32,000 nt of DNA from Zygophlyctis sp. KS116 (taxonomy: Eukaryota > Fungi > Chytridiomycota). Position 1 is the first letter of the stretch. The number at the start of each line of letters is the position of its first letter. The DNA lies in assembly GCA_054661495.1 (NCBI GenBank), contig BAAFSQ010000039.1:1-32000 (forward strand). The letters are read 5' to 3'. The translations under genes were made by a program, and so were the position numbers. The notes under the pieces are model-generated. The model had not been told where the DNA came from and made no database searches. It saw only the letters and a list, made by a program, of their open reading frames with translations. Shown here piece after piece: positions 18,590-31,472 of this stretch.

Positions 18590-18662
18590 TGCAGAATGTG
18601 AGGATCGAACTCACGACCTTAGGATTATGAGACCTACGCTCTACCAACGGAGCTCATTCTGC
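18590..18662 (-). tRNA. tRNA-Met(CAT), elongator type
   Basis: Reverse complement GCAGAATGAGCTCCGTTGGTAGAGCGTAGGTCTCATAATCCTAAGGTCGTGAGTTCGATCCTCACATTCTGCA: 7-bp acceptor stem, anticodon loop CT-CAT-AA, TTCGA T-loop and G1-C72. Confidence 0.93.
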
Positions 18663-18773: not shown

Positions 18774-19284
18774 TTATTCCCTCTCTGCAGCACTTTTTTC
18801 TCTTGCAGCTTGAGATTCTTTCTGAATTAATTGTAATTTAGTCTGCATTATTTCAACAACTGCACCTCTTTGATCTTGTTTTGTATTAATTGTAATTTCT
18901 AAAGAATCCATATTTTCCTTTAATAATCCAATTTTTCTTGAATAAAAATCATTTGCAGATGCTACATCCATATCTACATAATACCCTGTTCCAACATCAA
19001 CCATTACATTTTTAACATCACTCATTACCCCTTTCACGTACAAAGACTGTGTCATTGGAACAAGACAAGATTTATCTATTAAAATTAATTTAGAATTTTA
19101 TACCTTGATTGTTATTATTAAAACTCTTTAATGCTGCTTGACCATTATGAAAAGATACCAATGCAGACTTTAATTTTCCATAAGAACTAGTCAGTAGATT
19201 TAAATCTTTTTCTAATTCTTGCTTGATCATTTGGAGTTGCTGTAGAGGCAATTGTTGTATTGGAACGGATCCTTGTTCCATCAT
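18774..19284 (-). CDS. PFDN5: Prefoldin subunit 5
   Basis: Two exons; LVPMTQSLYVKG and VMVDVGTGYYV alpha-prefoldin motifs. Confidence 0.92.
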
Positions 19285-19402: not shown

Positions 19403-20056
19403 ATGTTGAAAATCATATTCTTTTTATCAATATTTTCAATCGGAAATACTGCAAATGTATTTGACGATACTATAGAAATTTCAAGCTCAGATTCGATTAC
19501 ATCTAAAAATATAGATTGGGATTATCCAACTGATGAACGATCAAGAAGAGCAAGTTTTACAGTTCCAGAATATATAGATTTGAATTTCTTGGATGATTTG
19601 GATGCATTACAAAAAGATCCAATTTTACAAGGTGCAATTTCTATAGATAAAGACACTAATAGCATTCAAGAAACTCAAAAAGTCTCTCATAATGATTTGA
19701 AGAAAGATTCGCCAACAAAAGACAGAGTATACAGATTAAAAAAGTCTAGAAATTCAAAAGACACTTTTAGAAATAATCAAAGATCTCTAATTGCAAAAGC
19801 TTTGGGAGAGAAATTACAAGTTAGACTAAAATCTGATTCAAATGTTTGTATTCCTTGGACTATGATGACTGGCGGTGATATTTTAAATTGGCCAGAAAAT
19901 GTTCCTTTTAAGAAATTACCAGAACTTAAAGTATGGGAACTTGATCAAATTGCTAAAAACTTGGATAAACTGGATTTCTCTGCGGATTTCTTGTCAAGAC
20001 TAAAGGGGATGAAATTTAAAAGGGAACCTCGTAGATCATACAAAATCAAGAATTGA
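19403..20056 (+). CDS. Putative secreted protein, one PW..GD..NWP domain (family member 1)
   Basis: Signal-peptide-like MLKIIFFLSIFSIGNTA; IPWTMMTGGDILNWPENV...LDFSADFL is homologous to the downstream genes. Confidence 0.75.
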   Translation: MLKIIFFLSIFSIGNTANVFDDTIEISSSDSITSKNIDWDYPTDERSRRASFTVPEYIDLNFLDDLDALQKDPILQGAISIDKDTNSIQETQKVSHNDLKKDSPTKDRVYRLKKSRNSKDTFRNNQRSLIAKALGEKLQVRLKSDSNVCIPWTMMTGGDILNWPENVPFKKLPELKVWELDQIAKNLDKLDFSADFLSRLKGMKFKREPRRSYKIKN

Positions 20057-20233
20057 GATTTTATTTTAGTTTTTTTTAATTTTTGATCATATTCAAGATC
20101 GAGAACTCTAAGCAGGATCTACAACTACTGATCCTTGTAGATCGTTGAAAAATTGTCTGCACGTTGGAGAATTTTATTGGGTTTGGAAATCTGTTTTTGA
20201 GCAAAATTGATTTCCGCTTTTATTGAAGTTGAT

Positions 20234-23200
20234 ATGAGATATCTTTTTAATTGGAGTTTAGTTATCTTATCTATTGGAGCATTTAAACCAAAAAATGATA
20301 ATACTCTTGGTAGCACTAAAGTTGATGGTCAAGCAGTATCGGGCAATCAAAGATTACCATTTCCCGACAACTTGAATGTTGATGATACATTGTTAATTGA
20401 AGCTGTCGATCAAACGGTTGATGAATTTGAACAATTGCTTCAAGAGGATTTTGGACTTTCTATTGACAGCGATGAGGGGATTTTGCCATCTCAGCAGAAT
20501 TCTGATATTTCTGAAAGAGGGGGCACGGTAGAGTCTCTAAAGATATCAAACTTGAAGAATGATGATCCTAAACAAGATGTGAAATTCCCTCCGAAAGCAT
20601 TCAATTCTTTTTTAAATGATGAGTCTACTACTGGTAATTTGATAATAGTTAATTTCTAGATGATGTTCAATACACTTCACATATTGATTATCTTCAGAAC
20701 GATAATCCTGAAATCCCTGATAATACGGAAAAAGGACAGTTTGCAGTTGATGACCCAATTCGTCAAGGGAATCGTATGCACCATTCTGTCTCGCAGTCAA
20801 CAATTGGCGATGATTTTAAAGATCCAGAACATTTAGAAGATGATGAAGATTGGGTTCTAGAGTTTAATAATCAAAAAAGTTCTTCTGAATCAGGAAAGAC
20901 GCCTGCATATCAGCGTACGATCTCGCAGTCAACGATTGACAATGTTGAAGACGCCCAAACTATTGAAAACCCCACGTTTAATGAAGAGATTCCTGAAAAA
21001 GAGAGTGTGGCCAAACATGAAGCTGAGACTTACATTGCTGGTACATTTAAATTATAATTTTTAGAAAATGCCCCTACTAATATAGATTTTTTCCGCAATG
21101 ATATGCCGAAAATTTCTGATAAAATGCTAGGAATAAATTTCGTTATTGATCCATTCCTTCGCCCAGTACGATTTGGAAATAGTAGATCGGAGAAGGTATG
21201 TCATGATTAAAAGCTGATTAATAGATAAAACTACCGACTTATTCAGAACTCAAAATGATGCGATCTATAATCAGAAATCATTTGCTTCAATCTATGAATA
21301 AGGGATATCAATACATGAAAAAAACCAAAAGTATTCCAGCATTTCAATCTACATATATCCCATGGACACTCATTCAAGAGGGTGATATAGTGAACTGGCC
21401 GGTTGGTGTAAAGAGTATTAGACCTTCTAAATTACCAAAATCAGATCAGTTAAAGATATATGAAAATCTGCATAGTATGTATTTTAGCTATGATTCTCTA
21501 AACAGAATTTCTACTCAAGAAAGACGAAATTATCATATCTGGAATAGAAGAGTGATTGAACTTAGTAGAGTCTTGAGTGAAAAATTACAGGAACAGTCTC
21601 AAGGGGCATCTAAACATGTCCCGTGGGACACGTTAAAGCCAGGAGATATAATTGGATGGCCTGATAGCATTGAAACCAGCAGGCCTATTTTCATTGAGCC
21701 TTCGGATTTGAAAAAGATTCTTAAAAATGTGCACATCATGCACTTTAGCCCATCATTTATTGCAAATATTCTACAGTCTAGTTCCGCACATCGGCATGAT
21801 GAATTGGAACAATTGCTTCATGAGGATTCTGGACTTTCTATTGACAGCGATGAGGGGATTTTGCCATCTCAGCAGAATTCTGATATTTCTGAAAGAGGGG
21901 GCACGGTAGAGTCTCTAAAGATATCAAACTTGAAGAATGATGATCCTAAACAAGATGTGAAATTCCCTCCGAAAGCATTCAATTCTTTTTTAAATGATGA
22001 GTCTACTACTGGTAATTTGATAATAGTTAATTTCTAGATGATGTTCAATACACTTCACATATTGATTATCTTCAGAACGATAATCCTGAAATCCCTGATA
22101 ATACGGAAAAAGGACAGTTTGCAGTTGATGACCCAATTCGTCAAGGGAATCGTATGCACCATTCTGTCTCGCAGTCAACAATTGGCGATGATTTTAAAGA
22201 TCCAGAACATTTAGAAGATGATGAAGATTGGTTTCCAGAGCTTAATAATCAGAAACGTTCTTTTGAATCAGGAACGACGACTGCACATCAGCGTACAATC
22301 TCACATTCAACGATTGACAATGTTGAAGAAGCCAAAACTATTGAAAACCCCGCGTTTAATGAAGAGATTCCTGAAATCTTTACTGACGGTATCTTTAATA
22401 ATATTGACGAACAGAAGATGTTTCTTTAAATATTGAATATTTTGATGATGAAATGCCTAAAATTTCTGATTTAAACACGGATGTTGAAAGAGATCAAATA
22501 ATTAATTCAGCACATTCGGCGGAAAACCCCAGACTGGATGATGTACGTTTTACTTTTAAGCTTATCAATAGATAAAACATACGAGGAAGCACCTCCATAG
22601 ATTTTTAGATACAAATCAATTAAAGGATAATGAATTTTCCACCGATCAAGCAACCAAGAATTCAAAAAGGCCTCGCTATGATCCAACTGACGAGACTACA
22701 GTAACAATTCAGAATGCTCCAGATGAAAAACAAGTGATTGATTTAAGTCAAACAGCAGATGAAAAAAAAGTTAATGACTTTACCGATACATCAGACAAAA
22801 CGCATGTTATTGACTTAACTGACGAATCAGATAAAGATAAAGCGCATGTTATTGACTTGACTGATACATCAGAGAATAATCAACTTGATCCTTCAATTGA
22901 TAAAGAGAGTGTGGCCAAACATGAAGCTGAGCCTTACATTGCTGGTACATTTAAATTTTAATTTTTAGATAATGCCCCTACTAATATAGATTTTTTCCGC
23001 AATGATATGCCGAAAATTTCTGATAAAATGCTAGGAATCAATTTCGTTATTGATCCAATCCTTCGCCCAGTACGATATAGAAACAGTAGATCGGAGAAGG
23101 TATGTCATAATTAAAAGCTGATTAATAGATAAAACTACCGACTTATTCAGAATTCAAAACTATGCGATCTAGAATCAGAAATCATTTGCTTCAATCTATG

Positions 23201-23719
23201 AATAAGGGATTTCAATACATGAAAACAACCAAAAGTATTCCAGGATTTCACTCTTCATACATCCCATGGACATTAATTCAAGAGGGTGATCTAGTGAACT
23301 GGCCGGTTGGTGTAAAGAGTATTAGACCTTCTGAATTACCAAAATCAGATCAGTTAAAGATATATGAAAATCTGCCTAGTATATATTTCAGCTATGATTC
23401 TCTAAAAAGAATTTCTACTCAAGAAAGACGAAATGATCATCTCTGGAATAGGGGAGTGATTGAACTTAGTAGAGTCTTGAATGAAAAATTACAGGAACAG
23501 TCTCAAGGGGCATCTATCAATGTCCCATGGGACACGTTAAACCCAGGAGATATTATTGGATGGCCTAATAGCGTTGAAATCAGCAGGCCCATGTTCATAG
23601 AGCCTACGGATTTGGAAAAGATTCTTAAAAATGTGCACAACATAGAGTTTACCCCATCATTTATTACAAATATTATACGATCTAGTTCTGCACATCAACA
23701 TCCATTAGGAATTATATGA
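20234..23719 (+). CDS. Putative secreted protein, about 1090 aa, four PW..GD..NWP domains, internally duplicated (family member 2)
   Basis: Start MRYLFNWSLVILSIGA. Introns 20634-20659, 21041-21064, 21196-21224, 22012-22037, 22389-22414, 22543-22571, 22945-22968 and 23100-23128 join all + ORFs into one open frame (3273 nt). Confidence 0.75.
20419..22376 (+). repeat. Direct repeat A (20419-20998) / A' (21797-22376), offset 1378
   Basis: Near-identical 580-bp copies read directly; the identical antisense ORFs 20612-20803 and 21990-22181 confirm it. Confidence 0.95.
20998..23701 (+). repeat. Direct repeat B (20998-21797) / B' (22902-23701), offset 1904
   Basis: 800-bp copies, colinear without indels, including two introns. 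Confidence 0.95.
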
Positions 23720-24028
23720 TATTCTGAAAAAATAACATTGAATTTATTATATACAGATATATGAGAATTTAATTCTGATGGATTAACAGAGTCCACTGAT
23801 CATGTCGTGCTTTGGCCATCATTTTTTACCAAAAGCATTGGATTGATCAATTGATGCTTTTTAGACTGTCACATGGGATGATTATGATTACCCTGATAAG
23901 ATCAGAAAATACTCTGCTTTTTGATTGCAACTTTTCCTGCTGCGATCAAGTTTTTCCTGCTGCGAATCATTTCGTGGCTCAGCCAAAATTAACTTTAAAT
24001 TCAATTAAATTTGATTCAATTGTAAATC

Positions 24029-26005
24029 ATGTTGACGCTATTTGTGATTAGTGCACTGTTAAGTATTTGTCCTGGCAATATTGCAATGGACGCCCAAACT
24101 AATTTGGCAAAAACTTCAAATTCTCCTGAAATTATAGATTCTGTGAAATATCCCCTCAAAAAAGCTCCAACGTCTGATTTATCTCTGACAGGGAATGTAC
24201 ATAAGGACCAGTCTCTTCCGATTGTAGTTCCCGAAGAAGCGGAGAAAGAAAGCATGGGTGGTTCCATCACAAAAAATTGGAAATGGCTTGAAGATATTGT
24301 TGAATCCGAAATAAATGAAGATTTGGCAGAGGAAATGGGACTTAGAAATGACGACCAAAGTTCTCTTAATAGTAATAATGAAGTTGATGATCTGCGATTT
24401 GATTATTTAGAGGAACTAGAAATGGTTTTGGACGATATTGAATTTCTTAATGATGAGAATCGAGGTAAAAGTGATTCACATATGTTGACTGTAACCGACT
24501 CGGAACATAGAAAGTCTAATCCTAAGAGGGTTTCACCGGTTCAACGTAAAGTAAGATGGAATTTGCCTGAAAACCATCAAAAAATAGGTCCTGAAAGATT
24601 AAGAAAAGTATCAATGGACGAATCAAAATATAATCAAGTTGGAAGCGGTGATGAATTGGTGTCAGATTCTAGTAGATCTGTGCAAGATGAGAATTTAGAA
24701 CGTGGAAACACTCGGGAAAAAATTTTATATGATAGTGGAGCATTTCCTGATCTTCCTTTAAACAGTATGTCTTTTGAAATTTATATGTAGATGAAATTAA
24801 TTATCCGGCTAATATCGAAGATTTTCATGAAGATATGCCAAAGATTGCGGATGAAATGCAAGGAGTAGAGTTTGAAGTTGATCCATTCGTCAGAGTCAAA
24901 AACGCTGGGAATAAAGAAATAGAAGATTCAGAAATGTTAATTCTACCAGCACAAACGAGTATTGGACGCATAAGTCCTGAGCAAAGTACTACTCAGCAAG
25001 TTCCTATGGTCAAGAGCCGCGATGAAAGTAGCCCAACACAAGTGAGTGATGACCAGGCGGATGTTATGGAAAATGATGACTCAAATTCAGTTGAAACAGA
25101 TGCTTTGTCTTCTGAAGAATTGAAAAGCCTATCTAACGATTTTAATGATATTCCACTCTTTTCGGATGAAATTCCTTACATATCTCTTTCTGGTATATAT
25201 TAAATAGTTTATGGTATAGATGACATTGAATATCCTACAGATATTGACTACTTTCATAATGATATGCCACAAATTGCTGATCAATTAGAAGGCATAGATT
25301 TAGTAGTTGATCCGTATGTACGCAAAGAAGAGGTAAGTGGTTTTCATCAATAATGCACAGAATAAAACCCCCATATATAAGTCAATTAATGGTAAAGAAA
25401 TGCAAAAAAAAATTAATCGTCACCTTTTCCAAAAGATGATTGATGGCATTAGAATTGTATCAGAGACGGAAAATATAAGACCACATAAATTTGTGAATGT
25501 TCCATGGAAATTTCTTAAACCAGGAGATTTAGTGAATTGGCCGCAAGATGTTCAATATACTCGCATTTTTAAACTAAATGCACAGGACTTGCAAAAAGTA
25601 TACGAAAACCTACACAGTATAAATTTCAGTCATGGTGCTTTATTAAGACTTGCTCATTTTGGTAATAAAGACTTGAAGAGTCCTACCAGTTCTAAGGCTG
25701 CTCCATCGGACAAAAATGCTGATGGATGGGGAATGAAAAGAAATTGGATTTCAAAAGTTCTAAATGGAAAACTCAAAGAGCAAACTAATAGAAAATCTGT
25801 TAATGTTCCATGGAGTTCATTAGTCTCTCAAGATATTGTCGGATGGCCTGAAAACGTCAGATTACAAAGGCCATGGTATATACCGACAAAAGATATACAG
25901 CATATTATTGATCGTTTGCCTCTATTAGAATTTAGTAAACAATTCATTGATGATTACATGGCAACTGTACCAGAAGCTGTTGTGAAAAATGCACGCATGA
26001 ATTAG
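24029..26005 (+). CDS. Putative secreted protein, about 631 aa, two PW..GD..NWP domains (family member 3)
   Basis: Signal-peptide-like MLTLFVISALLSICPGNIA; introns 24765-24790, 25193-25219 and 25333-25360 join the three ORFs in frame; VPWKFLKPGDLVNWP and VPWSSLVSQDIVGWP. Confidence 0.78.
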
Positions 26006-26291
26006 ACTTGCAAAAATACATATTTTATACAAAGGATTATCTGCATTATGGCCTTGATTTCAACTAGCACATTCTCTTACCCTTTTAATAAATTGTGTTG
26101 ACCATTTGATGTGCTAATTGAGAGAATGACATACCGATTATCGATTTGTAACACTAATGCATAGATTCATCCATCTAACTACTCGATGGTTGGACTTAAA
26201 TGTCTGATTCAGAATCAGTTTTGGGATCATCTGATAAAGTACAAAATCAAGAAACATTAAGAATTATAAACAATTTATTATTGAAAGAAAC

Positions 26292-26632: not shown

Positions 26633-27598
26633 ATGGATGCAGTCGATGCTCCAAAGAGAATTGGCATTGATGATTTGGATTTTGTCCGATATGGTCTGTA
26701 TGGATCAATATTTATAGTGGGAATCAATGCTACTCTTTTCCCTTTAGATACAGTTACAACTATCAGAATGGCTACTAATAATTCATGTGAATCAAGGATT
26801 TCAATTTTTAAATTAGTAAAGAATATGTGGAAAAATGAAGGAATTACAAGGTTTTGGAGAGGAGTTTTGCCGACTGTAATTGGGGGATTACCAGGACAAA
26901 TTACATATTATTCAGCTTATGAGATCATGCAAAAATATACTCAAGGTGTAATTCCAGGAGATGGGGATTTTAATGTCTTTGCTAGAGGATTTATATCAGG
27001 AGCAAGCGCTGAACTTGCAGGTGGGCTTTTTTATGTTCCTGCAGATGTTGTAGCTCAAAGACTTCAAGTGCAAAATTGTTTAGGATTTACTCATAATTGT
27101 AGATTGTATAATGGAGCTACAGATATTATTGGGAAAATCCTGAAATTTGAAGGATTTCTTGGATTTTATCGTGGTTATTTGGCTTATTTGGCTGCTTATG
27201 CTCCTGGATCAGCTGTGCAATGGGGATCTTATGAACTCTCAAAGAAAATGCTATATTCTTTATTCAAGATTATTGAAAACACCGACAATACCAAAGAAAT
27301 TTATTACAAGGAGCAGATTGTTAATGCTACTGCTGGTGGATTAGCTGCAGCTTGTGCTGTTTCTACAAATAATCCACTTGAAGTTTTAAGAATTAGACTT
27401 CAGTTGTTAAATTGTTCAAATCCCAAACATGGTCAGTTTATTAAGGAGGGATATATACCATTGTTTATAAAAATGTATACAGAGGAAGGATGGAGAGTAT
27501 TTTATAAAGGAGTTGGAGTTCGACTGTTTATGGCAGTTCCTACTGCTATGTTGGCTATGAGTGGTTATGAAACTGCAAAATCTTGGGCAGTAGATTAA
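26633..27598 (+). CDS. Mitochondrial carrier, SLC25A44-like
   Basis: Three Px[DE]xx[KR] repeats (FPLDTV, VPADVVAQRLQ, NPLEVLRIRLQ); N-terminal DDLD..RY and YAPGSAVQWGSYE recall SLC25A44; intronless. Confidence 0.85.
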   Translation: MDAVDAPKRIGIDDLDFVRYGLYGSIFIVGINATLFPLDTVTTIRMATNNSCESRISIFKLVKNMWKNEGITRFWRGVLPTVIGGLPGQITYYSAYEIMQKYTQGVIPGDGDFNVFARGFISGASAELAGGLFYVPADVVAQRLQVQNCLGFTHNCRLYNGATDIIGKILKFEGFLGFYRGYLAYLAAYAPGSAVQWGSYELSKKMLYSLFKIIENTDNTKEIYYKEQIVNATAGGLAAACAVSTNNPLEVLRIRLQLLNCSNPKHGQFIKEGYIPLFIKMYTEEGWRVFYKGVGVRLFMAVPTAMLAMSGYETAKSWAVD

Positions 27599-29708: not shown

Positions 29709-31472
29709 ATGCAAAATTTCAAGATGATCAAGTCGTTGATTTGGTTTGGTTTACTAATGCATTCCTCTTTGGCTATGGATATAGACCAGGAATTGCAAAG
29801 ATCCTTCAAGAAATTAAAAATCACCCCTCGACCTCCTTCTGAGTTATCTAAACTTCCTAATGAGGCATTGACGAGGATTGCATCGTTTGGAAAACAGCCA
29901 CTATCTGATTTGATTTCTCTCTATAGAACTATAAATCCTCGAATTGACCCACTTGATATGGAAGCGGATAACCCACTAAGTTACCATGATGCATCAGTTG
30001 ATCATCAGTCTGGATTGTCTGATTGGTTGCGAATGCCTCTCAATTCCCCAAAGAAACAATTTCAGTTAAAGAAATTATTGGAAAATCCAACGGTAGACTT
30101 CAATATTCAAAGGAAATTAAAAGCAATGATAGAAGCTGAGGCTGTTCCGTCTATAGGATTTTGGCCTAATGATCACTTTGATCCAAGGAAAATTGCAAAG
30201 CTAGATCTTGCTATAACTCAAGTTTTTCTACTGGGAGATTTGTATTCATTTAATCTGTTATTAGATAAAGGAGTGATTCCTGATTGGGGGACTCAAGTTG
30301 TGGTCATAAAAGCAGGAAATTTGGAGCTGACTAAGCGTATATTCAAGATAAGGGAGGAGGTTTTTAATACAATAGAGGATGTCCCAAGGTATTATCTTCT
30401 TTATGCGATACCTTCAGGAAATCTAGATCTGGTGAAATATTTGGTTGAAGAAAGAGGAATTCAAGAAATTAATGAGGAAGTCATTTCTGAAACAATAGAA
30501 AAGGGGACTTTAGCAATAATGGAATATTTCATGGAAGAGAAGAGATATATAGTAGATCGATGGATGGATCTTGATATACTACATCTAATCCTTAGCAAAG
30601 CTGCCCGAAAAGGAAACCTGGATATGTTTGAATATTTGCAGAGTTTACAAGAAAATGTGTTTGGAAATAATGAAATTAAAAGATCTCTTTTAAGAGATGT
30701 TTCGGGAAGCGGAAACCTTCCCATGCTGATATATTTGATGATAAATTTCAATAATGTTCAACCTGACATGGAATGCCTATATGCCGCTATTGATAACGGT
30801 GGATTGTTTGTTTTAAAATATCTTGTTCAAATTGTTGGTTTGGTCCCAGATGATGAATGTTTATTACGTGCTTCAAAAAAAGGTTATTTAGTAGCTGTTA
30901 GATATTTACTTCGACCTAAATCCAGCACTTCACATCAATTAGTCCCTAGTTTAGATTGTTTGCAGGAGGCTTCTCATATCGGAAACATTTGGTTGGTGAA
31001 GCTATTTGTCGAAAGTTATGGACTGATTCCGAATTCAGAAACTTTGCAAAATACACTAGAGGTCTTTAATATCGATTTGATCAAATACCTGATTAAAAAA
31101 ACTGGACTTAATCCATCCAATCAATTCTTGAATAAAGCCGCCGAACAAAGAAAATTCAATTTTATCAAATATTTGACTAGTCTTGGTGTCAGAGTCTCTA
31201 GTACAACAATTGAATCTGCGTGTCTTGGAGGAAATATCGAAATAGTAAAATATCTGATAAATCAGAGTGGAATGACTCCAAATCAAGAGTGCCTTAAACA
31301 AGCTGCCATGAGTGGAAATATCAAATTAGTCAAGTTTCTTGTTGAATATTATAGAATCATCCCTGAAGGAGACACTCTGAATTTTATAAAAGATCATGGA
31401 AAATGGAGAGATCATGATTATTCTGAAATATTATCCTACTTGAAATCATATATGAATCTGATGGAAATATAA
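29709..31472 (+). CDS. Putative secreted F-box-like + ankyrin-repeat protein
   Basis: Intronless 587 aa; hydrophobic leader MIKSLIWFGLLMHSSLA; LSKLPNEALTRIASF F-box-like motif; about 12 short ankyrin-like units (A..GNLDLVKYLVE, A..GNIEIVKYLI). Confidence 0.8.
   Translation: MQNFKMIKSLIWFGLLMHSSLAMDIDQELQRSFKKLKITPRPPSELSKLPNEALTRIASFGKQPLSDLISLYRTINPRIDPLDMEADNPLSYHDASVDHQSGLSDWLRMPLNSPKKQFQLKKLLENPTVDFNIQRKLKAMIEAEAVPSIGFWPNDHFDPRKIAKLDLAITQVFLLGDLYSFNLLLDKGVIPDWGTQVVVIKAGNLELTKRIFKIREEVFNTIEDVPRYYLLYAIPSGNLDLVKYLVEERGIQEINEEVISETIEKGTLAIMEYFMEEKRYIVDRWMDLDILHLILSKAARKGNLDMFEYLQSLQENVFGNNEIKRSLLRDVSGSGNLPMLIYLMINFNNVQPDMECLYAAIDNGGLFVLKYLVQIVGLVPDDECLLRASKKGYLVAVRYLLRPKSSTSHQLVPSLDCLQEASHIGNIWLVKLFVESYGLIPNSETLQNTLEVFNIDLIKYLIKKTGLNPSNQFLNKAAEQRKFNFIKYLTSLGVRVSSTTIESACLGGNIEIVKYLINQSGMTPNQECLKQAAMSGNIKLVKFLVEYYRIIPEGDTLNFIKDHGKWRDHDYSEILSYLKSYMNLMEI

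Follow-up and report, generated by a model that had tools for sequence, protein, structure and literature searches.

The Xanthomonas TAL effectors are nucleus-targeted proteins in which tandem DNA-binding repeats are combined with an acidic activation region. Other secreted effectors directed to the nucleus are PsCRN108, a Phytophthora CRN effector with an HhH motif (PMC4695088), and RiNLE1 of Rhizophagus (PMC8048545). In the vertebrate TFII-I family (GTF2I, GTF2IRD1 and GTF2IRD2), several basic repeats are present in each protein; GTF2IRD1, which has a nuclear localisation signal (NLS) and is nuclear, undergoes SUMOylation, and its binding partners include proteins with a SUMO-interaction motif (SIM) (PMC3493543). 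The TFII-I repeat was found in vertebrate proteins for every bona fide match and for the ESM Atlas clusters (commonest phylum Chordata), and our literature search returned nothing tying GTF2I repeats to fungi. Here we describe an island of three co-oriented genes (positions 19403–26005, + strand) that carry seven copies of such a repeat. The window, that is the whole stretch of 32,000 nucleotides (nt) that was analysed, is contig C39 of a eukaryotic assembly of 12.7 Mb in 1175 contigs with a GC content of about 33%. The island encodes, in tandem, modular GTF2I-repeat proteins that bear leaders, are poor in cysteine and combine acidic with basic parts, and it belongs to a family that is expanded in this chytrid. 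We propose, with a probability of about 0.45 for the statement as a whole, that the three paralogues may be exported transcription-factor mimics acting in the nucleus of another cell. The genes were modelled as follows.

19403–20056, + strand: gene 1, a single exon of 217 amino acids (aa) with a leader, an acidic stretch, a basic patch and one GTF2I-like repeat
20234–23719, + strand: gene 2, nine exons (20234–20633, 20660–21040, 21065–21195, 21225–22011, 22038–22388, 22415–22542, 22572–22944, 22969–23099 and 23129–23719), about 1090 aa, four repeats and an in-frame internal tandem duplication
24029–26005, + strand: gene 3, four exons (24029–24764, 24791–25192, 25220–25332 and 25361–26005), about 631 aa and two repeats

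The GTF2I-like repeats are located at the following positions.

19754–19999, + strand: repeat of gene 1
21261–21506, + strand: repeat 2a
21522–21767, + strand: repeat 2b, the copy used for the AlphaFold model
23165–23410, + strand: repeat 2c
23426–23671, + strand: repeat 2d
25403–25648, + strand: repeat 3a
25709–25954, + strand: repeat 3b

The residues P, W, D, W, P and F are invariant in the seven copies, each of about 80 aa, and the mean column identity is 50%. Two profiles were built, A1 from the seven window copies and A2 from 36 copies of the whole genome; all searches were run on single exons. The profile of the seven copies recovered exactly those seven in the window, with E values from 5e-35 to 1e-31. 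When compared with all PDB sequences at E ≤ 10, A1 and A2 matched solely GTF2I/GTF2IRD1 repeat structures (4 of 4 matches each). Among 1.84 billion representative proteins, 151 were matched by A2 at E ≤ 0.001; three of these (E 9e-13, 5e-11 and 9e-11) are members of the vertebrate TFII-I family, with Pfam E values of about 1e-140 to 1e-150. An hhalign comparison of A2 with 25 vertebrate repeats gave a probability of 96.3% (E 1.9e-9, 69 columns). The AlphaFold (AF2) model of repeat 2b, built with A2, had a predicted local distance difference test (pLDDT) score of 94.5, and its fold agreed with that of solved GTF2I domains, which consists of a long N-terminal helix, a short strand pair and C-terminal helices. 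In a Foldseek search of the PDB with this model the top 10 matches were all GTF2I domains (probability 0.96–1.00, TMq 0.53–0.74), the rest staying at or below 0.04, and the best match in the ESM Atlas was TFII-I with a template modelling (TM) score of 0.79. Pfam reported weak GTF2I (PF02946) matches for two window open reading frames (ORFs), at E 0.04–0.05 and 14.4–14.6 bits. A paralogue encoded on contig C24 of the same genome (P0003) exceeded the PF02946 cut-off, with 34.2 bits versus 27, as did the environmental relative P0015 with 32.3 bits. The repeat is almost certainly a divergent GTF2I-like repeat (PF02946), of the kind present in vertebrate TFII-I, GTF2IRD1 and GTF2IRD2, where the repeat serves in binding both DNA and proteins. 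The original prediction had taken the domain for an unnamed family, a view refuted by the Pfam, PDB, fold and profile evidence. Two of the approaches it had put forward were applied here: the profile search found the seven copies in the window, at least 41 in the genome (on at least 13 contigs) and vertebrate TFII-I in the protein database, and the AlphaFold and Foldseek comparison returned the GTF2I domains given above. Its description of three co-oriented leader-bearing genes with one, four and two copies was borne out, given introns of 24–29 nt, and the acidic/hydrophobic stretches and basic patches that it had quoted are present.

The likeness of the island to the TFII-I family is that of a same domain, by profile, by profile-profile comparison and by fold, and extends to the presence of several basic repeats per protein, NLS-like patches and a link to SUMO. 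The differences are equally clear. TFII-I and GTF2IRD1 orthologues are recognised by an N-terminal leucine zipper, 5–6 repeats and no signal peptide, whereas the window proteins have a signal-peptide-like leader, no leucine zipper and 1–4 repeats; they are also fungal and fall under the Pfam cut-off. The core motif has shifted from VPY..P....GLP.GIPF in TFII-I to [IV]PW....GD[IL][IV][NG]WP in the window.

Proteins of a second fungal phylum showed a similar fold. Basidiomycota proteins without annotation (ESM Atlas clusters) shared the GTF2I-like fold with TM scores of 0.68–0.75, and the one protein that was examined had no clear leader. At E 9e-8, the chytrid profile matched a Hysterangium stoloniferum protein (P0099, KAF8530140.1). 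The GTF2I-like fold also weakly resembled PF11001 (YDR124W-like) and the Nrf1 DNA-binding domain.

Each of the three island proteins starts with a leader, called by rule.

19403–19453, + strand: leader of gene 1, MLKIIFFLSIFSIGNTA
20234–20281, + strand: leader of gene 2, MRYLFNWSLVILSIGAF (MRYLFNWSLVILSIGA)
24029–24085, + strand: leader of gene 3, MLTLFVISALLSICPGNIA, with a cleavage region kept in the syntenic orthologue on contig L033

All three leaders are composed of a short n-region, 11–15 uncharged hydrophobic residues and small residues ahead of a plausible cleavage site. A hydrophobic run of this length is too short for a membrane anchor. When the leader rule was applied to the window, one unrelated ORF alone scored as leader-bearing. 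The leader and repeat of gene 1 lie in one uninterrupted ORF with no Met between them and no alternative start, so that the repeat could not be translated without the leader. A hydrophobic leader and repeats were again found within single ORFs on contigs C711, C492 and C1054. The family members of this genome with an intact N-terminus are mostly leader-bearing; the five-repeat C24 paralogue is leaderless. A signal-peptide-like leader was present in at least 22 of the 58 non-vertebrate database relatives with a complete N-terminus (those starting with Met and with at least 44 residues ahead of the first repeat), a lower bound because many of the others visibly begin at an internal Met of a downstream exon. 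In the L033 orthologue of gene 3 the leader and its cleavage region are kept (...TNS/MDADAQS versus NIA/MDAQT).

These observations bear on the possibility that the three genes encode the fungus's own nuclear regulators, whose hydrophobic N-termini would go unused as signal peptides, be it through an alternative start or promoter, through isoforms that lack the leader or because the first exons are wrongly modelled. The homology to a nuclear transcription-factor repeat and the existence of the leaderless C24 paralogue are in agreement with it, and in genes 2 and 3 the splicing that would connect leader exon and repeat exons is predicted only. We nevertheless consider it improbable, as gene 1 offers no Met between leader and repeat, the leader and the repeats share a single ORF on three other contigs, leaders are frequent in the relatives, and the leader is kept in the syntenic orthologue while the remaining protein diverges.

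Genes 2 and 3 could be read through only after removal of GT..AG spacers of 24–29 nt, a size class of introns unusual for fungi. A frame-compatible GT..AG intron of this size was available at all 11 of the 11 junctions (20634–25360, + strand). The tiny-intron class is real in this genome, since in the prefoldin gene that flanks the island the removal of a 28-nt GT..AG stretch (19062–19089, − strand) restores the conserved LVPMTQSLYVKG. Contigs of sequencing runs were aligned to positions 20150–26100. Contigs from an RNA library covered parts of genes 2 and 3 with 94–97% identity, a level which indicates that they come from a related strain. In gene 2, the segments 20419–20718 and 21797–22096 are 99% identical, and the segments 20994–21293 and 22898–23197 are 95% identical. 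DNA contigs from two runs span both junctions of this internal duplication, which is thus not an assembly artefact. In X1, the likely source run, the contig depth over positions 20150–22231 was 198 at the leader-side junction, 336 at the internal junction and 511, approximately the sum, in the shared repeat. The uneven depth may correspond to a difference between haplotypes or cells, or to an amplification bias.

Outside the repeats, the proteins are strongly modular. The coding sequence switches back and forth between strongly acidic exons (net charge −9 to −23, pI 4.1–4.8) and basic repeat exons (pI 8–10), and the mean net charge per repeat is +4.0 in the window and +3.2 in vertebrates. The acidic stretches, which are long and free of cysteine, contain amphipathic acidic motifs; one example is DEFEQLLQEDFGLS. 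The motifs DEFEQLLQEDFGLSID (20423–20470) and DELEQLLHEDSGLSID (21801–21848) resemble H2, the second activation subdomain of the herpesvirus protein VP16, a resemblance which we mention as a lead only. A single-sequence AlphaFold prediction of the whole gene 1 protein had a mean pLDDT of 31 with the repeat itself unfolded, and is uninformative on disorder. The short motifs and the recurrent mini-exon module, named DMPKI, are listed below.

From 19700, + strand: bipartite NLS-like pattern, gene 1
22665–22676, + strand: NLS-like KRPR in KNSKRPRYD, gene 2
22734–22862, + strand: three tandem SUMO-interaction-type motifs, VIDLS, VIDLT and VIDLT, within a 36–42-nt DNA repeat of gene 2
24509–24559, + strand: bipartite-NLS-like RKSNPKRVSPVQRKVRW, gene 3
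21067–21195, + strand: DMPKI module copy 1, gene 2, directly ahead of a repeat-pair exon
22417–22542, + strand: DMPKI module copy 2, divergent, gene 2
22971–23099, + strand: DMPKI module copy 3, gene 2
24793–24921, + strand: DMPKI module copy 4, gene 3
25222–25332, + strand: DMPKI module copy 5, gene 3

The VIDL[ST] motifs begin at positions 22734, 22806 and 22848, and each is followed by acidic or Ser residues, which is the canonical form of a SIM. The DMPKI module (37–43 aa, NID.F.NDMPKI.D...GI.F..DP) precedes a repeat-pair exon directly in three of its five copies. Within the genome it is confined to the island, and it also opens the environmental relatives P0005, P0012, P0054, P0060 and P0107. 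Pfam found no domain besides GTF2I in the window proteins, the acidic exons and the DMPKI module being matchless. Cysteine is nearly absent: of the roughly 1930 residues of the three proteins only 2 are Cys, and one of these is within a leader.

The composition of the proteins is relevant to a second alternative, in which they would be secreted or surface proteins acting outside cells, the GTF2I fold being co-opted for a ligand other than nuclear DNA, such as polymers of the wall or of mucilage, DNA outside cells or the surface of a host, and the acidic regions serving as spacers. Such proteins would carry the same leaders, and a large, fast-evolving and tandemly expanded family is typical also of surface and adhesion proteins. 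The occurrence of the fold in Basidiomycota proteins can be added in its favour. However, the near absence of cysteine would be unusual in stable extracellular fungal proteins, Pfam revealed no wall-anchor, glycosylphosphatidylinositol (GPI)-like or carbohydrate-binding domain, the repeats have kept a basic charge like that of the vertebrate repeats, which bind DNA, and NLS-like and SIM motifs serve no purpose outside the cell. We regard this alternative as rather unlikely.

The repeats of the C24 paralogue were the nearest matches to the window profile outside the window (E 4e-18). This protein belongs to the same genome and the same repeat family as the island proteins, but differs from them by the lack of a leader, by an N-terminal KNKRQK basic patch, by its passing the Pfam cut-off and by its conservation: it is 56% identical to its environmental orthologue, compared with approximately 30% for the repeat exon of gene 3 and that of its syntenic orthologue. 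In a tree of the repeats, the first repeats 2a, 2c and 3a clustered together and the second repeats 2b, 2d and 3b formed another cluster, which indicates that the two-repeat unit is older than the split between genes 2 and 3. The NWPENLPIKSP-type repeats from other contigs made up a clade of their own with good support, and the C24 repeats grouped with the window repeats with weak support.

The position of the locus was examined on two related environmental contigs, L033 and L034. Both carry an orthologue of the mitochondrial carrier gene of the window (80–82% identical), and in both, as in the window, a GTF2I-repeat gene is its immediate upstream neighbour. The repeat exon of this neighbour has only about 30% identity with gene 3, so that the repeat gene has evolved far faster than the carrier gene beside it. 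The ratio of nonsynonymous to synonymous substitution rates (dN/dS) between the two units of gene 2 was about 0.9–1.0, with small counts, and among the strain variants listed 27 were nonsynonymous and 12 synonymous. The family keeps its chromosomal position and evolves fast; its leader and its repeat core are conserved. A decaying or selfish array, made of pseudogenising duplicates or of mobile-element cargo with no function for the organism, could account for the dN/dS of about 1 between duplicated units, for the many family copies on short contigs (1–2.6 kb) and for the weak gag-like Pfam matches of the environmental relative P0015. It is very improbable in view of the fact that all exons are open with 11 of 11 junctions frame-compatible, that core residues are invariant in the seven copies and that two related genomes have the locus at the same place among housekeeping genes.

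A transposon origin was considered separately and ruled out, as neither ORFs for a transposase or reverse transcriptase nor terminal repeats occur in the region, and as the locus lies in a syntenic setting of housekeeping genes.

Relatives of the island proteins came nearly all from environmental assemblies (30 were looked up). Two leader-bearing relatives were found in the NCBI assemblies GCA_048222815.1 (contig L030) and GCA_048222835.1. One leader-bearing, two-repeat relative, P0117, was recorded under positions 2983–4230 of L030 (GCA_048222815.1) and L031. The seryl-tRNA synthetase encoded beside one such leader-bearing relative is closest to that of Paramicrosporidium, with 70% identity. 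Paramicrosporidium is an intracellular parasite lineage. Since the seryl-tRNA synthetase of the P0117 genome has its nearest counterpart there, the combination of a leader and GTF2I repeats is not confined to chytrids.

We favour export of the three paralogues to the nucleus of another cell because it best accounts for the joint presence of a putative signal for the endoplasmic reticulum, a domain typical of nuclear DNA-binding proteins, NLS-like patches and SIMs in proteins that can hardly form disulfides. In this proposal, the leader-bearing proteins would pass through the secretory pathway out of the fungal cell and would then reach the nucleus of a host or prey cell by means of their NLS. 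The basic repeats, which are candidate DNA-binding units given a basic charge like that of the vertebrate repeats, may bind DNA or chromatin there, and the acidic stretches and SIMs might recruit the host transcription machinery or SUMO-dependent machinery. The mimics could have evolved from a TFII-I-like nuclear protein of the fungus itself, represented by the leaderless five-repeat C24 paralogue. The original prediction had likewise read the proteins as secreted and active inside a host cell, possibly in its nucleus. Its central idea, nuclear action, gains support from the homology of the repeat to a nuclear DNA-binding transcription-factor repeat, and the leaders are real and recurrent; the unnamed status of the domain is the part that did not stand. 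The resemblance to the nucleus-targeted effectors of Xanthomonas, Phytophthora and Rhizophagus lies in the association of an export signal and an NLS, both putative in the window proteins, with a module directed to nucleic acid or chromatin, and for the TAL effectors also in the tandem repeats and the acidic region. It is an analogy of design and not of family, as the domains and the delivery routes are unrelated.

Several observations weigh against export to a foreign nucleus. The leaders were called by n-, h- and c-region rules only. Motifs as short as those of the NLS, SIM and activation-like types form readily in low-complexity acidic or basic sequence. The window proteins score under the PF02946 gathering cut-off of 27 bits, so that the membership of their repeats in this family rests on transitive and profile evidence. 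A dN/dS near 1 is also compatible with relaxed constraint. The DNA of the window was seen only in freshwater and estuary metagenomes. Finally, no splice joints were seen in the RNA-library contigs on genes 2 and 3, and a freshwater metatranscriptome contig covering positions 23021–23259 with 96% identity runs unspliced through the proposed 29-nt intron at 23100–23128. This contig could be pre-mRNA, DNA carry-over or the sign of a wrong intron call. With no joints and one retained intron, the RNA-library contigs are not evidence of expression or splicing.

The finding of a TFII-I repeat in a chytrid extends the known range of the domain. To our knowledge, almost no effectors are known in zoosporic fungal parasites, and the island provides a concrete candidate family for how such parasites might manipulate host nuclei. 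It is possible, if doubtful, that the family is a fungal counterpart of the TAL effectors, in which a TFII-I-like factor of this early-diverging fungus would have been turned into an expanding, fast-evolving exported family, each member combining a signal peptide, acidic activation-like regions, an NLS, SIMs and tandem DNA-binding GTF2I repeats and reprogramming the transcription of an algal or protist host, with leader-bearing kin in a Rozellomycota-like lineage. If the repeats bind DNA with a readable specificity, they would constitute a new modular DNA-binding scaffold.

The island is placed between a prefoldin gene and a mitochondrial carrier gene. The other features of the window that were recorded are the following.

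18590–18662, − strand: tRNA gene, just past the prefoldin gene (Rfam, 61 bits)
18774–19284, − strand: prefoldin gene, left flank of the island
26633–27598: mitochondrial carrier gene, right flank of the island
29709–31472, + strand: ORF of 587 aa that opens with a signal-peptide-like stretch, MQNFKMIKSLIWFGLLMHSSLA, and carries ankyrin repeats at its C-terminus (Pfam Ank_2, 1.9e-20)
416–1, − strand: beginning of a fourth gene whose N-terminal architecture is that of the family: leader MGAIIIRLAYFALILILKVVC, then an acidic region, DEADKIY..EGF..QEFLMDLF

The tRNA gene was the sole match in the Rfam scan of the window. A scan for bacterial promoters and terminators was indistinguishable from that of shuffled sequence, and is irrelevant to a eukaryote. 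The nearest named relatives of the mitochondrial carrier belong to the Rhizophydiales, with Batrachochytrium and Homolaphlyctis at 51% identity, followed by Polyrhizophydium, Entophlyctis and Globomyces, and flagellar genes (ODAD1) are also present in the window. These relatives of the carrier rule out Rozella, which genome size and GC content had suggested as the source. The genome is that of a Rhizophydiales-like, uncultured freshwater chytrid. The ORF at 29709–31472 is a second example, near the island, of an export-type leader associated with an intracellular-type domain.

The fourth gene, at positions 416–1, is truncated by the contig end, and no repeat is visible in it. Its leader and acidic region resemble those of the leader-bearing repeat protein on C1054, and its tail has a match in the N-terminus of P0009, a protein with two repeats. 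The C1054 protein begins with the N-terminal module of this gene, as do the relatives P0050 and P0052.

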